Source: Anthoceros angustus (taxonomy: Eukaryota; Plantae; Anthocerotophyta). From it: DNA of 64,000 bases. Location of the stretch: contig VJWM01000173.1 in assembly GCA_010909165.1 (NCBI GenBank), forward strand, positions 62,001 through 126,000, given 5' to 3'. Both the position numbers and the translations under genes were made by a program. Below are positions 39,001 to 44,666 of this stretch, one piece after another; position 1 is the stretch's first letter; each line of letters opens with the position of its first letter. Under the pieces are notes generated by a model. It did no database searches. It was given only the letters and a program-made list of their open reading frames with translations, and was not told the DNA's origin.

Positions 39001-40814
39001 CTGGCACAAGCTGGCCACCATCAACAATAGGCTCAGTGGAAAGCAGTCTAGATGATGGAGAACGGAAGAACAAACCATAGTCAGTTCACAAGGTGCATTA
39101 CTGCCTTGCACACCTCCTGCTGGGGACATGCAACTATTTACTCAACCCTTCCATTCCTAAGTGCCACCAAGGCTGTTGCCAGTCCTTTCATCACATTGGA
39201 AGCCAAATCAAGTCTCAAGCCAGGGGGGCATCGTTGTACCTCTATCACTCGCAAGAAACGGAAGTACACAATCAGACAAGAAGGTCGCTCACAAACCCAC
39301 AGAACACCACAACATATTCAGTCACTGTCTAGGCCTGCTCTGGGCATAGCTAGACCAAACTACAGCTAAACGAGCCCCCTCCTTGATGAAATATATGCTA
39401 GAAAGCCAACAGCTTCAAAATTTAGTCAGAGTCTCCAACTATATGGCATGATTTCCGTGAGCTGCCCGTAAAAATCATTGTGGTCACAAGGATTTTTACC
39501 ATGGCTGCACTGGATACAAGCCCCATGCTTCTCCTTGCAGATAGCGCAAAGCAGCTTCCAACGCTCTTCTCTGACACCTTCGACATTCTTTATGGGCTCC
39601 ATTGCCTCCATGCTTTGGATGTAGGTCTCCGGCACCCACTGGCAGCAGAACAAGTGCGCGAACCTGGGCTTCCCTGAACCTCTGGTGCTACCATTGGAGT
39701 CTGCTTCGGCGACTGGCTTGAGAGCACCCCCCCTCACAGGACAGAGAACGCAATCTGGCGGACCCGTCTGGACACTAGGGACGTCAGCATGCCAAGCATC
39801 CGTGGCACTGGACTTTCTGTGGGAGACAGTCCTACGGGGGTGCTTATTTTTGAAACTACACCAAGTGCAAATCCACTCGCCCTCTGGCACCACACGGATG
39901 CCATAACAGTCTTGATGCGCGGCAACATCACACGAATCACAGAAGAGAATCTGGTTTGCATGGTCACTATCCCCGCCATAACACACATGGCAGAGCTCGT
40001 CGTCGTCATTTTCCGGGGGGGAAATCACGGTGGTCATCACCTTGGCGTCCGCCGAGCTCGACACCTTTCTCTTCTTGCTCACGGGGCTGGCGGCAAGAAT
40101 CTTCCTCTTAACCCGAGTGACGGACTGCTGGGCCAGCGCCTCCGAGGCCCTGTCCGCTTCCGCGCCATCCTCCCTCGCCCAGCTCTCCGCGTAGTGGCCA
40201 CCCAGCGGTGGGACTGCCAAGCACGGGTCTCGCAAATAGCCCTGGGGAGTCAGGCCCAGGTACGTGGGAGGCCGCAACAGCCTCACATCCTGCGGGGTCA
40301 CCGGCCGGAAGTAGTCCTCCATGTGCAGCCAGAAGGTCCGCTCCCCGGTGGAAGACTCCTTGTCCCCGTACACCTTCTGCTTGCTCCCGTCTCGGCCCCT
40401 GACCTGCGTCTTTTTCCCCCTGCTCCTCCTCTTGCCCTCGGCCCCGACAGCCACCTCCACCGGGGACACGAACCCACCTGCACCCCCGCCATCCTCGTAC
40501 TCCCCAACCACCCCCCTGTCGGACACCACCTCCAGCAGCTGGGAGTAGAGATCCCCCTGCCCACCGCCTGCATCCCGATCCCAATCCCGATCCGGCTCGT
40601 GCTCCTGGTCCGGATCCTGATCCCGCTCCTGCTCATGATATCTGGTCAATTCCGCGTACTCGTCCCTGTCCACCCTGAGCCGCAGCTTAAGCTTCTGTGA
40701 CTGATGCGTCTGCGAGCCCTCTGCCACGGCCTCCTCTGCCTCCTTCAACGTCATCTCCTCTTGCTCCGAGGAGCACCCGCGGGCCACAGGCCGGGCCACT
40801 TCAACTGTTGCCAC
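33067..40814 (-). CDS. PHD finger / zf-HC5HC2H (PZP) x2 chromatin protein, BRPF/Jade-like (similar to Arabidopsis At1g77800 as recalled); multi-exon, start codon uncertain
   Basis: FWLHMEDYFRPV; PHD CHVCYGGDSDHANQILFCDSCDVAAHQDCYG; CVLCP...FAHLFCCQWVPE...CAICKEKHGACIQCSHG|FCATAFHPLCAR...DLRAFCLKHS; second PHD CNICG...CDRCK|VVVHQECYG; CAVCP...WAHVFCAQ|W; FHPSCARDYG...YCERHS; DFEKVRLICERIVRREK; C-terminal SMQNLRLPKGYAYVPVD; stop TAG at 33067-33069. Confidence 0.93.
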
Positions 40815-41643
40815 TCACAGACGGTGGCCAAGCCCTCCCTCACCATCCTAATCTGCCCTCCTGCCCGCCGTGCCATGGGCCTGGGCCGGCCGTGGCCAGG
40901 AACGCCGTCCCTCACATGTCGTGCTCCTCACCAGGGTTTGCTGCTTGCTGCATGCATCTGGGACATGCGATTCCATGGCGGCAAGCACCAAGAAACCCCG
41001 GCCGTGACACCTGCATGCAACGGCCTCGCCCAACGCTTCTTGCAAGCTCAGCCTGAGGTGTGGCCGCCTCGTCAACACCAAACCCTTGCCCAGCAAACCC
41101 TCGTCAGCTGCCCTTCCTGCTGCTGCTTCTGCTTCGGTTCTTGGGGTTTGGCGAATTAGGGCAGAAAGGTGGTGCGAAGGCTAGGGAAAGGTTGCCCTTG
41201 TAACTTCTTCGCCGTTTCCGCCGCCCGCTCCCCGATTTGAATGTTTGAAATTCGTTTCACCGCGGCTCTCCCCGAAAAAGGAATCCTCGCCGCCCTCGTT
41301 CCGTCTTCCCAAACTCGGTACACTCTCCCAACCATTTGCTTTATCTAGACTATATCGCTACACAAATATGTGTACATAACACGCACTCAAACGTCACAGC
41401 TCCCGCTCGGCTTAAGTCCACTCACATATGCTCGGTGGTGGTGTACAATTTTGCAGTACATACATGCGACATGACTTTGCCGGTCATTTTTCCACTCAGA
41501 GCTCGTGACGTCAGAGCTCGTGTGTCGGTTGTGCTTCACAACCGAACACCCACTACACCCTGCTCTATGTGTGCACTAAAGGAGCTACCAGTCTGTCAAT
41601 ACCCAGCATTGTGCAGGCACTGTACGTAACTTCTGGTAGGTGC

Positions 41644-41746
41644 GTCACATAATCGGGTGGGGTGAAGAGCTCCATTCCGCGTTTCCACTGCTCCGGCTTT
41701 TTCAACGTCTGCAGAGGGCCTCGCTCTTCCACCCGCCCGATATGAC
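41644..41746 (-). ncRNA. Candidate pre-miRNA-like hairpin (~103 nt)
   Basis: GUCAUAUCGGGCGGGUGGAAGAGC pairs with GCUCUUCACCCCACCCGAUUAUGUGAC (about 21 pairs) around a 52-nt loop. Confidence 0.35.
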
Positions 41747-42021
41747 CACGTTCGGCTCGAAGAACCACGAAGGGGCTTCAACTCATCATCTGGCAAGAAC
41801 GCGAATGACAGAAATTCGGGATCAGAAAGCACAACACTTGGAAACCCTAAACCCAAAGGACAAACGGCGGCAAAACGTCGACAGAAACCAGCCAAGCGCT
41901 CATACACAAGCAATGGTATCTCTCCAGGTCGTACCACAGCATGTCACAAAGAAGAACTTAAGACACCGGAAGGGAGCACATGACTGCATGACATGAACGG
42001 AAGTCAGAGGCCTCCACACAA

Positions 42022-42099
42022 AGCGCTCATATTCTATGGGTGTAAACTGTCTTCCATGCCGTGGCATTCAGATCGAGGAATTTTTATCATCATCGCACT
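42022..42099 (-). ncRNA. Box C/D snoRNA copy A, predicted guide for 18S rRNA 2'-O-methylation (snoR8-like)
   Basis: C box AUGAUGA (42093-42087); guide AAUUCCUCG; D' CUGA (42071-42068); C'-like UGGAAGA; D variant AUGA (42030-42027); terminal stem AGUGC/GCGCU. Confidence 0.8.
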
Positions 42100-42205
42100 G
42101 GAGACCAAAAGTGACACCAATGGGAGACAAGCCACGCATACAAGATCAAAGAAAGCCTTGAACAAGACCACAGACCAGTGTCCACACGATTCAGACGTCT
42201 CACAC

Positions 42206-42284
42206 CAAGCGCTCAGATTGGGATGTAAAGTGTCTTCAATGCCGCAGCATTCAGCACGAGGAATTTTCATCATCACCGCACTTG
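42206..42284 (-). ncRNA. Box C/D snoRNA copy B, predicted guide for 18S rRNA 2'-O-methylation (snoR8-like)
   Basis: C box GUGAUGA (42276-42270); guide AAUUCCUCGU; D' CUGA (42254-42251); C'-like UUGAAGA; D CUGA (42216-42213); 7-bp terminal stem CAAGUGC/GCGCUUG in K-turn register. Confidence 0.88.
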
Positions 42285-42402
42285 ACACAGGCCTCAGTAA
42301 CATTATCGACCACGACAGCATCCACAAGAACAGAAAACTCTGCCACAACTAAAACCTAACCCTGGACAGATCCAGCAGTCATATCCTGACCTACATCCGT
42401 GG

Positions 42403-42855
42403 CTACGACGCTGCCGGACCGACAAGGACTCCTTGCGCGCTTCCCTCCTTCGGTGCGGCCGCATCAGAACTGTTGTTGTCTGATGCGTCTCCTCTCCGGA
42501 TCTTGATCTTGTACCTTGTCTCAAACTCCACAAGCTCCTTCCTTTTCTTCTCCAGAGCTTCCGCAAGTTTGCCAATCACTTCTTGCAACCCGTCCCTATT
42601 GTTCTGGACAGCGGGAATGACCTCTTCAACAGTTCTCTCCACCAAAACTCCGCCGATCATCCGAAAGCACTTCCTTTTCGCGTCCAGCGGCTTGATAGCG
42701 TTGATGACAAGCGTGTGCTCATTCAGCTCCAGCTCCAGTTCAGAAATCTTGGAATACAGCTGGTTGAGCTCCGAGCGCAGAAGATTCCACTTCCCGACCA
42801 CCGCCTGCTCATTTACTGCCTCCACATGCGACCTCTCCTCCCCGCCTTCCGCCAT
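42403..42855 (-). CDS. PFD2: Prefoldin subunit 2, 150 aa, intronless CDS
   Basis: KISELELELNEHTLVINAIKPLDAKRKCFRMIGGVLVERTVEEVIPAV and C-terminal GSAQGVLVGPA are typical of plant PFD2. Confidence 0.97.
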   Translation of the reverse strand: MAEGGEERSHVEAVNEQAVVGKWNLLRSELNQLYSKISELELELNEHTLVINAIKPLDAKRKCFRMIGGVLVERTVEEVIPAVQNNRDGLQEVIGKLAEALEKKRKELVEFETRYKIKIRRGDASDNNSSDAAAPKEGSAQGVLVGPAAS

Positions 42856-42971
42856 GCTCCAACACGCTACACCCCCACTATCCGCTACTCAGCTCCACGG
42901 CCTCCAGTGTGACAAGGCTCTCCCAAGTCAGCTTTAGCGAACGATAAATCCGAAAAATGAAGGAAGATGGA

Positions 42972-43112
42972 AGAAGTCTATTATTATGGACGACTTGAAC
43001 TAAGATAGAAAAAGTCTATTATTATGGACGACTTGAATTAAGATAAAAGAAGTTTATTATTAAGGACGACTTGAACTAAGATAGAAGAAGTCTATTATTA
43101 TGGACGACTTGA
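42972..43112. repeat. 38-bp minisatellite (~3.7 copies) ~120 bp upstream of the PFD2 ATG
   Basis: AAGTCTATTATTATGGACGACTTGAACTAAGATAGAA(G/A) starts at 42974, 43012, 43050 and 43088. Confidence 0.95.
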
Positions 43113-44666
43113 ATGAAATTTTCTATCATAGTACTGGATAGTTTTCCAACTTGTATGAGGACATCGTGTAGTATATGGCATACCAAAGGGGACAGAGGGG
43201 ATGGGACAATTTTTTTTTCGCGAAACCCATGCAAGGCGTAGGGATCTTGCAGAATATACCCTACATTCCATTACGGTTTCTTTTTTCACAGCACATGGTC
43301 AGAAGGCCGCTTTGGCGCCCTAACCGAAAGCGGCCAAGCACCAAAGGGGACACACACTATGTCCTCAAACGGTGTCCTTGAAATTTTGATGCTTTCACCT
43401 TTGAAAACAAAGAGACGGACACTATGTTTTCGAATGTTTCCACCCTTGTGCCATTAAGTTTTCTTCGATGGCATCCAATGGCGCCAAACCCTAACCTCGC
43501 TCACGGCCGCCCATCCGCTTGACAACCCTACACACAGTATTATGGTATCGCATGCACGACGGACAAGGCGGCACGGCCATGGTTTGCGAACCATGCATGT
43601 GCCCATTTCCGCCTTCGCAGCTATGGACTTTTGACTGTATTCGTTAAGGAACCCGCGATGTCGGAAACAATGAGAACCACGATCCTCTTTCAAACAAGAA
43701 GAAGCACGATCCGCTCGAAGCGAAGAGGGATGGCCATCAAGAATATGAAAGCCGCCTTCAACCTTCACGTGGGCCTTGAGGAGGCGGCAAACCTCTCACC
43801 TTCACCGGGAGAAGGCCAAGAAGACCACATATTGCAAAAGATCAGCCATCGTGCATGGCAACTGGCAACCTTCCAAAGAATCGCAGATTAGGCGACCACC
43901 ACCACCACCGCTCACCCAACAACCTCGCCAAGAATGTTTACGTAAAGAGCCAAAATTCACGGTGAAGGGTGCCATTCCATTGATCAAAAAGGATGTCCAT
44001 CGCACATTGCAAAATTGCAGTGTGTAGCATCAAACCCTATCTCCCATCTGCCTTCCTACGCAGATGCTTCGCCCCTATGCAAAAACCAAAAGCGGCTGAT
44101 GCATCTCTCGACAAGGGATGATGCCGCCTACTTCTCCTCGTCAGTCCATGCGCTTGATCATCCGGAGAACCTTAATTGTGCCCTCAATGGCCTCGCCCGA
44201 GCATTCCATGCTCTCTCTCTGTCCGGTTGGCGGCGTCCCGCCTCCTGAAAGCCGGGCATTGGGCGCCTGAGGCACACGCCGCCGCTGCCCACTTGGACAC
44301 CGTGTCCGACCGTAGTCGCTGCCTCCCCCTTGTGCTCGCCTCCGCTGAGTTGGGGTTGGGCGCACCGCCTCCTTCTTCTTCCGACATACCCGCCCGCCAC
44401 CGTCACCGCAATTGCTCCTCCTCCTCCTCCTCCTCCTCCTCCTCCTACGGTGTGCCGGATGCTTGCTGGAGCTCGCAGCAGCTCGCCCCGCCTCCTTCCT
44501 CCGCCCCGAGCCTCGCCTAATTGCCTGGCTCCACGCCGAGATGCCGCCACCGGTAAATGGTTATTCCTCCCATACGCCTTCCTCAACCGAATCGGCTCCG
44601 CCCCACTGCCGCTGATCGCCTGGCCGGCCGTCCGCCTCCCACCACCACCGCCCCTCCACGCGCCGG

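Follow-up and report, generated by a model that had tools for sequence, protein, structure and literature searches.

snoRNAs reside in introns as the norm in vertebrates, and intronic clusters are known from rice. The closest described relatives of the RNAs considered here are AtsnoR8a and AtsnoR8b of Arabidopsis (Rfam family RF01284), a pair of tandem paralogues in which a D′ guide with the core AAUUCCUCG serves 18S Am1579 and a D guide, ACACCCAUAGAAU, serves 18S Um1264, with an AUGC...GCAU hairpin between the D′ and C′ boxes. Both methylations have been mapped in Arabidopsis 18S rRNA by RiboMethSeq and both are assigned to At3gCDbox95.1/.2, which are AtsnoR8a/b; the two RNAs are also abundant in fibrillarin coimmunoprecipitates (Azevedo-Favory et al. 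2021, PMC8583080). In the fragment G1578-U1584, two methyl groups have been located by mass spectrometry, one at A1579 and the other at m7G1581 (Enroth et al. 2019, PMC6847341). As to its age, snoR8 has been placed among the orphan families and "recent innovations", in a survey that found conservation throughout the land plants for only seven C/D families (Patra Bhattacharya et al. 2016, PMC5122169).

When the window (the whole 64-kb stretch of hornwort DNA that was analyzed) is searched with Rfam cmscan at gathering thresholds, exactly two matches are returned, both to snoR8a (RF01284), both on the minus strand, and both full length (model positions 1-92 each):

42207-42285, minus strand: snoR8-family box C/D snoRNA copy A, 79 nt; score 38.8 bits (gathering cut-off 37 bits); D′ guide intact, D guide altered by a 3-4 nt deletion
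42022-42101, minus strand: snoR8-family box C/D snoRNA copy B, 80 nt; 61.9 bits, E = 4.8e-09; both guides intact

Copy A exceeds the RF01284 gathering score by 1.8 bits only, and a permissive Rfam scan of positions 40500-44500 gave only weaker, overlapping C/D families at the two copy sites. Both copies carry the boxes of the class, and the positions of all boxes, as well as that of the copy B D guide, were verified by script:

42270-42276, minus strand: copy A C box, GTGATGA
42256-42265, minus strand: copy A D′ guide, AATTCCTCGT, followed by one base and then the D′ box
42251-42254, minus strand: copy A D′ box, CTGA
42233-42239, minus strand: copy A C′-like box, TTGAAGA
42213-42216, minus strand: copy A D box, CTGA
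42087-42093, minus strand: copy B C box, ATGATGA
42074-42082, minus strand: copy B D′ guide, AATTCCTCG, followed by two bases and then the D′ box
42068-42071, minus strand: copy B D′ box, CTGA
42050-42056, minus strand: copy B C′-like box, TGGAAGA
42031-42043, minus strand: copy B D guide, ACACCCATAGAAT
42027-42030, minus strand: copy B D box, ATGA

In the minimum free energy and centroid folds, both copies are closed by a terminal stem of 5-6 bp and have an internal hairpin of 4 bp (ATGC/GCAT). Of 82 aligned columns, 65 are identical between the copies (79%), and a spacer of 105 nt separates them. Their fold energies are unremarkable and not informative (z of -0.8 and +0.8 for the two copies); the guides of C/D snoRNAs must stay single-stranded, so that ordinary folding energy is expected. 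The initial annotation had read two minus-strand box C/D snoRNAs at 42022-42284 and had proposed an Rfam search as a check on them; that search, which puts both units in snoR8a above the gathering score, and the location of the boxes and terminal stems bear it out. Judged by their sequences, the two units are true members of snoR8, a plant box C/D family, and paralogues of each other. Chance resemblance to snoR8 was considered and rejected on the covariance-model scores and on guide identity across the family.

The two hornwort copies share with AtsnoR8a/b the order of the boxes, the D′ guide core, the hairpin between D′ and C′, and the arrangement as two tandem paralogues, whereas the D guide is common to copy B only, copy A being without one. 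They differ from the known RNAs in length (79-80 nt, compared with 83-90 nt in the fetched snoR8a members, with a hairpin loop 5-6 nt shorter), in having a canonical C box, (A/G)UGAUGA, where the snoR8a family has AUGAUUA, in belonging to a non-seed land plant, and in sitting behind a gene for prefoldin subunit 2 (PFD2) and not within a cluster of other snoRNAs. A wider view of the family was obtained from a metagenome collection scanned with a degenerate C-box/D′-guide motif, which yielded 18 loci. All 18 are snoR8a (80-100 bits), angiosperm-like and AT-rich (25-34% GC), with no bryophyte-like sequences among them. Alignment of 11 distinct sequences from this set with copies A and B (n = 13) shows that AATTCCTCG together with the D′ box is invariant in 13/13, and that ACACCCATAGAAT together with the D box is invariant in 12/13, the exception being copy A, whose D-guide region carries a 3-4 nt deletion and one substitution. 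Both guides of copy B are identical to those of the 11 angiosperm-like family members. The D′ guide had been singled out in the initial annotation as the most conserved segment outside the boxes; this holds between the two local copies, but not family-wide, where the D guide of copy B is equally conserved. On metagenome contigs L013, L016, L019, and L021, which are AT-rich plant DNA, snoR8a lies inside larger snoRNA clusters, with snoR97, U36a, Z223, Z278, SNORD25, or Z103 as partners, and the isolated pair behind PFD2 contrasts with these.

There is no 18S gene within the 64-kb window, and the targets of copies A and B were sought by a simple guide scan against the 18S, 5.8S, and 25S sequences of a plant rDNA unit (L042), a stand-in that is by Rfam a complete plant-sized unit (18S, 1810 nt; 5.8S; 25S, 3388 nt); the hornwort's own 18S is assumed to be alike from the conservation of this rRNA. 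The D′ guide of copy A forms 10 Watson-Crick base pairs with ACGAGGAAUU and that of copy B forms 9, and in both cases N5 lies opposite A1581 of the L042 18S, the equivalent of Am1579. The D guide of copy B forms 12 Watson-Crick base pairs with AUUCUAUGGGUG, with N5 opposite U1265 of the same 18S, the equivalent of Um1264. The D′ duplexes are short, at 9-10 bp, and the remaining matches of the scan on the L042 rRNAs are shorter or depend on G-U pairs. For the D guide of copy A the scan of L042 gave no convincing rRNA target, the best match being 8 bp, and elsewhere. These results agree with what had been proposed from the sequence, namely that the fifth nucleotide upstream of D′ pairs in both copies with the A of CG[A]GGAAUU (as seen in the guide scan of the L042 18S), that this A is Arabidopsis Am1579, a target of the snoR8 family (as in the assignment to AtsnoR8a/b, PMC8583080), and that it lies two bases from the conserved m7G (as in the methyl groups at A1579 and G1581, PMC6847341). 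We regard snoR8 identity, together with an Am1579-type target, as close to certain. The second (D) guide of copy B, with its predicted Um1264-type target, was absent from the earlier reading; in copy A this guide has been lost by a small deletion.

The paralogues are predicted to differ in function chiefly by the D guide, which copy B retains and copy A has lost. Lack of a second guide would make copy A either a single-site back-up copy or one that is starting to decay, and a further segment of the locus bears on this choice:

41892-41980, minus strand: possible decayed third snoR8 copy (tentative), from co-linear alignment to copies A and B

What survives in it is the start of the hairpin and, in TATGAGCGCTTGG, the D box with the 3′ terminal segment; its C box and D′ guide are mutated. 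Aligned with copies A and B under +5/-4 scoring it gives z of 3.6 and 4.8, respectively, with 2/400 and 0/400 shuffles reaching the score, and two other scorings give z of 2.2-3.0; it has no Rfam match at E<=10. It may be the relic of a third snoR8 copy, and the locus would then provide a small case of duplicate divergence, with one bifunctional copy, a second that lacks one guide, and a third that may be dead. One could suppose that only copy B is functional and that copy A is a decaying duplicate heading to the state of the third relic. Copy A does score 38.8 bits against a cut-off of 37, its D guide is deleted in part and without a good target, and the likely dead copy adjoining it indicates that copies in the array do decay. 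Nonetheless, it has kept canonical C (GTGATGA), D, and D′ (both CTGA) boxes and a 6-bp terminal stem, and its D′ guide is not only intact but 1 bp longer than that of copy B, and we think it quite unlikely that copy B alone is functional.

The gene behind which the pair sits, and the next gene downstream, are as follows:

42403-42855, minus strand: PFD2 coding sequence, single exon, 150 aa; stop codon TAG at 42403-42405
39426-40814, minus strand: open reading frame of the downstream PHD-finger gene; Pfam PHD and zf-HC5HC2H, BRPF/Jade-like

The PFD2 product matches Pfam Prefoldin_2 (1.4e-22), and the proteins most similar to it come from plants and carry the name prefoldin subunit 2, with 60-71% identity and with Psilotum and Sphagnum at the top; the exact protein has no record in the assemblies, and a word-index protein search gave nothing closer than 71% identity. 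The coding sequence lacks introns here, as it does in the fetched loci of Sphagnum, Marchantia, and Diphasiastrum. For the PHD-finger gene, a Kozak-like gccgccATGG lies near 40975 with a GTGAGG donor about 45 nt later, which suggests a short first coding exon near 40932-40975.

Copy A begins 117 nt after the PFD2 stop codon, on the same strand, and it is quite likely that the snoRNAs are cotranscribed with PFD2. The pair could instead form a dicistronic snoRNA gene in its own right, lying between PFD2 and the next gene and driven by a separate Pol II promoter. Independent polycistronic clusters are the commonest arrangement in plants and in Arabidopsis (PMC8583080, PMC5122169), and none of the 18 metagenome snoR8a loci, several of which lie in multi-snoRNA clusters such as are reported from flowering plants, includes PFD2. 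However, the 117 nt from the stop codon to copy A would have to accommodate the PFD2 3′-UTR, its poly(A) site, and the promoter of the snoRNA gene; this gap contains no TATA-like element, and the nearby telo-boxes lie upstream of PFD2 or downstream of the snoRNAs, with none in the gap itself. An independent gene seems to us highly improbable.

The telo-boxes are of interest in their own right. Such motifs are known from the promoters of translation-apparatus and snoRNA genes in Arabidopsis, and the window contains only two exact matches to AAACCCTAA (0.4 expected), which bracket the PFD2-snoRNA unit:

43486-43494, plus strand: exact telo-box match AAACCCTAA, ~630 nt ahead of the PFD2 start codon
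41842-41850, plus strand: exact telo-box match AAACCCTAA, ~50 nt ahead of the acceptor predicted for the putative intron described below

The first of these is possibly an element of the PFD2 promoter, and together the two may tie the PFD2-snoRNA locus to promoters of the ribosome-biogenesis type. The second could be either an intronic element or part of the promoter of the downstream PHD-finger gene, and the latter assignment would be an argument against the intron model. Between the upstream telo-box and the PFD2 ATG there is also a tandem repeat (42964-43113; 38-nt unit, 3.9 copies, 90% matches), which lies 110-260 nt upstream of the start codon.

How the snoRNAs would be released from a PFD2 transcript depends on whether they are enclosed by an intron, for which there is a candidate:

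41790-42390, minus strand: putative 601-nt PFD2 3′-UTR intron (predicted), enclosing copies A and B and the relic

Canonical splice signals, matched at the level of consensus only, flank the snoRNAs on the PFD2 strand. The donor, ATGTAG/GTCAGG, lies 12 nt after the PFD2 stop codon and carries an uncommon C at position +3; a branch-point-like CTGAT (41821-41825) lies 32 nt before the acceptor and is followed by a pyrimidine tract and CAG/A at 41790. The enclosed block is 35% U, compared with 18.5% in the coding sequence and 23% downstream. In a 100-nt sliding profile of the gene strand it has 29-41% U (one window over copy B has 26%), the flanks have 13-23% upstream and 16-24% downstream, and the profile changes in sharp steps at ~42400 and ~41790. 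U-richness is also typical of plant 3′-UTRs. In several respects the arrangement is that of known intron-hosted snoRNAs, such as those of vertebrates and the intronic clusters of rice: the RNAs share the sense strand with a housekeeping gene, have predicted GT...AG flanks, and lie in intron-like composition, and the putative intron carries several snoRNAs, which is also the case in intronic clusters of plants. It departs from them in that the host would be the gene of a chaperone subunit and not one of the translation apparatus, and in that the putative intron lies wholly within the 3′-UTR, 12 nt after the stop codon. Arabidopsis UPF3 has a 3′-UTR intron 19 nt beyond its stop codon, and it is not this intron that triggers nonsense-mediated decay (NMD) there (PMC4417159); the putative PFD2 intron, at 12 nt, should therefore not trigger it either.

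The same block can be read without an intron, in which case the U-rich region from 42402 to ~41800 would be the PFD2 3′-UTR or read-through transcript, the snoRNAs would be cut from unspliced transcripts by endo- and exonucleases, in the manner of polycistronic snoRNA precursors of plants, and the telo-box at 41842-41850 would be a promoter element of the PHD-finger gene downstream. Splicing has normally no part in the processing of snoRNA clusters in plants, most of which are nonintronic (PMC5122169, PMC4417159). The composition of the block suits a 3′-UTR as well as an intron, the telo-box lies just before the composition step, and the C at position +3 of the donor also speaks for this reading. 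On the other hand, the PFD2 mRNA would be destroyed if a snoRNA were cut out of exonic sequence; the likely start codon of the downstream gene is ~800 nt further on, such that transcription beginning near 41800 would entail a long leader; and the donor, the branch-like site, and the acceptor coincide with the composition steps. No AAUAAA-like hexamer is present from 42402 to 41200, which also counts against an unspliced 3′-UTR, although the lack of such hexamers downstream of the stop codon does not by itself separate the models with and without an intron. We consider processing without an intron unlikely, and put it at about even odds that a spliced PFD2 3′-UTR intron, as predicted from these signals, hosts the snoRNAs.

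The reading that we favor overall, with a probability of roughly 0.6, is that the locus encodes two genuine snoR8 paralogues, likely derived from the PFD2 primary transcript and probably by way of the 601-nt 3′-UTR intron. By analogy with the family, each copy would be bound by fibrillarin and the rest of the core C/D proteins, and the guide of 9-10 nt upstream of D′ would direct 2′-O-methylation of the A in 18S ACG[A]GGAAUU, the equivalent of Am1579. The D guide of copy B would additionally target the U in AUUC[U]AUGGGUG, the equivalent of Um1264. The RNAs would most likely be made from the PFD2 primary transcript and would probably be released from the intron that is predicted to start 12 nt after the stop codon, near enough to it that the spliced mRNA would escape NMD.

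Synteny of PFD2 in related taxa, which had been suggested as a check on the arrangement, does not extend it beyond the hornwort: none of the fetched PFD2 loci, from a moss, a liverwort, and a lycophyte, shows the linkage. No Rfam snoRNA was found beside PFD2 in Sphagnum compactum, Marchantia polymorpha, Diphasiastrum complanatum, or a 67-kb JGI plant contig, nor by PFD2 on a second JGI contig and three short contigs, with shorter Sphagnum-type ones among them; the flanks scanned were ~4 kb on each side for the genomic loci L003, L005, L006, and L008, and <1 kb for L004 and L009, which are short contigs. PFD2, if it is the host, is therefore a lineage-specific one. If the 3′-UTR intron is real, it would be a sign that snoRNAs are expressed from host-gene introns in this lineage, unlike in Arabidopsis, and the PFD2 host arrangement, if confirmed, would be a further instance of intron hosting, which is already known. 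A broader proposal is that hornworts routinely place snoRNA clusters in introns a few nucleotides after the stop codons of housekeeping genes, as here in PFD2. We hold this to be doubtful, but if it were true, each host transcript would give rise to both an NMD-immune mRNA and snoRNAs, the mode of expression would be distinct from the independent polycistronic clusters of angiosperms, and the promoter of a chaperone gene would be linked to ribosome modification.

Both the family to which these RNAs belong and its targets were known already, and the basic understanding of how box C/D snoRNAs work is left unchanged; the modest new point is phylogenetic. A literature search on hornwort snoRNAs found no paper. 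The presence in a non-seed land plant of a full-length snoR8 with both guides unchanged implies an early origin of the family, and this argues that snoR8, as identified here from its sequence, is ancestral to land plants. The plant-specific 18S methylations Am1579 and Um1264 are then probably ancestral to land plants too.

A minor observation arises from the choice of the 18S reference. A scan of the viral collection found no plant 18S, and a looser scan gave only a partial, nonplant 18S, which was left unused. In the genome collection, at least 99 contigs (loci L031-L110 among them) carry both 18S motifs at the spacing seen in Arabidopsis, all in assemblies labelled bacterial; L031 and L042, the sole rDNA loci used, were confirmed as eukaryotic rDNA by Rfam, carry rRNAs of plant size, and come from assemblies of leaf-nodule symbionts (Candidatus Burkholderia). 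Judging by their assembly titles, other contigs with the paired motifs may be host DNA, for example from sponges or corals, and those from human-gut MAGs may be human.
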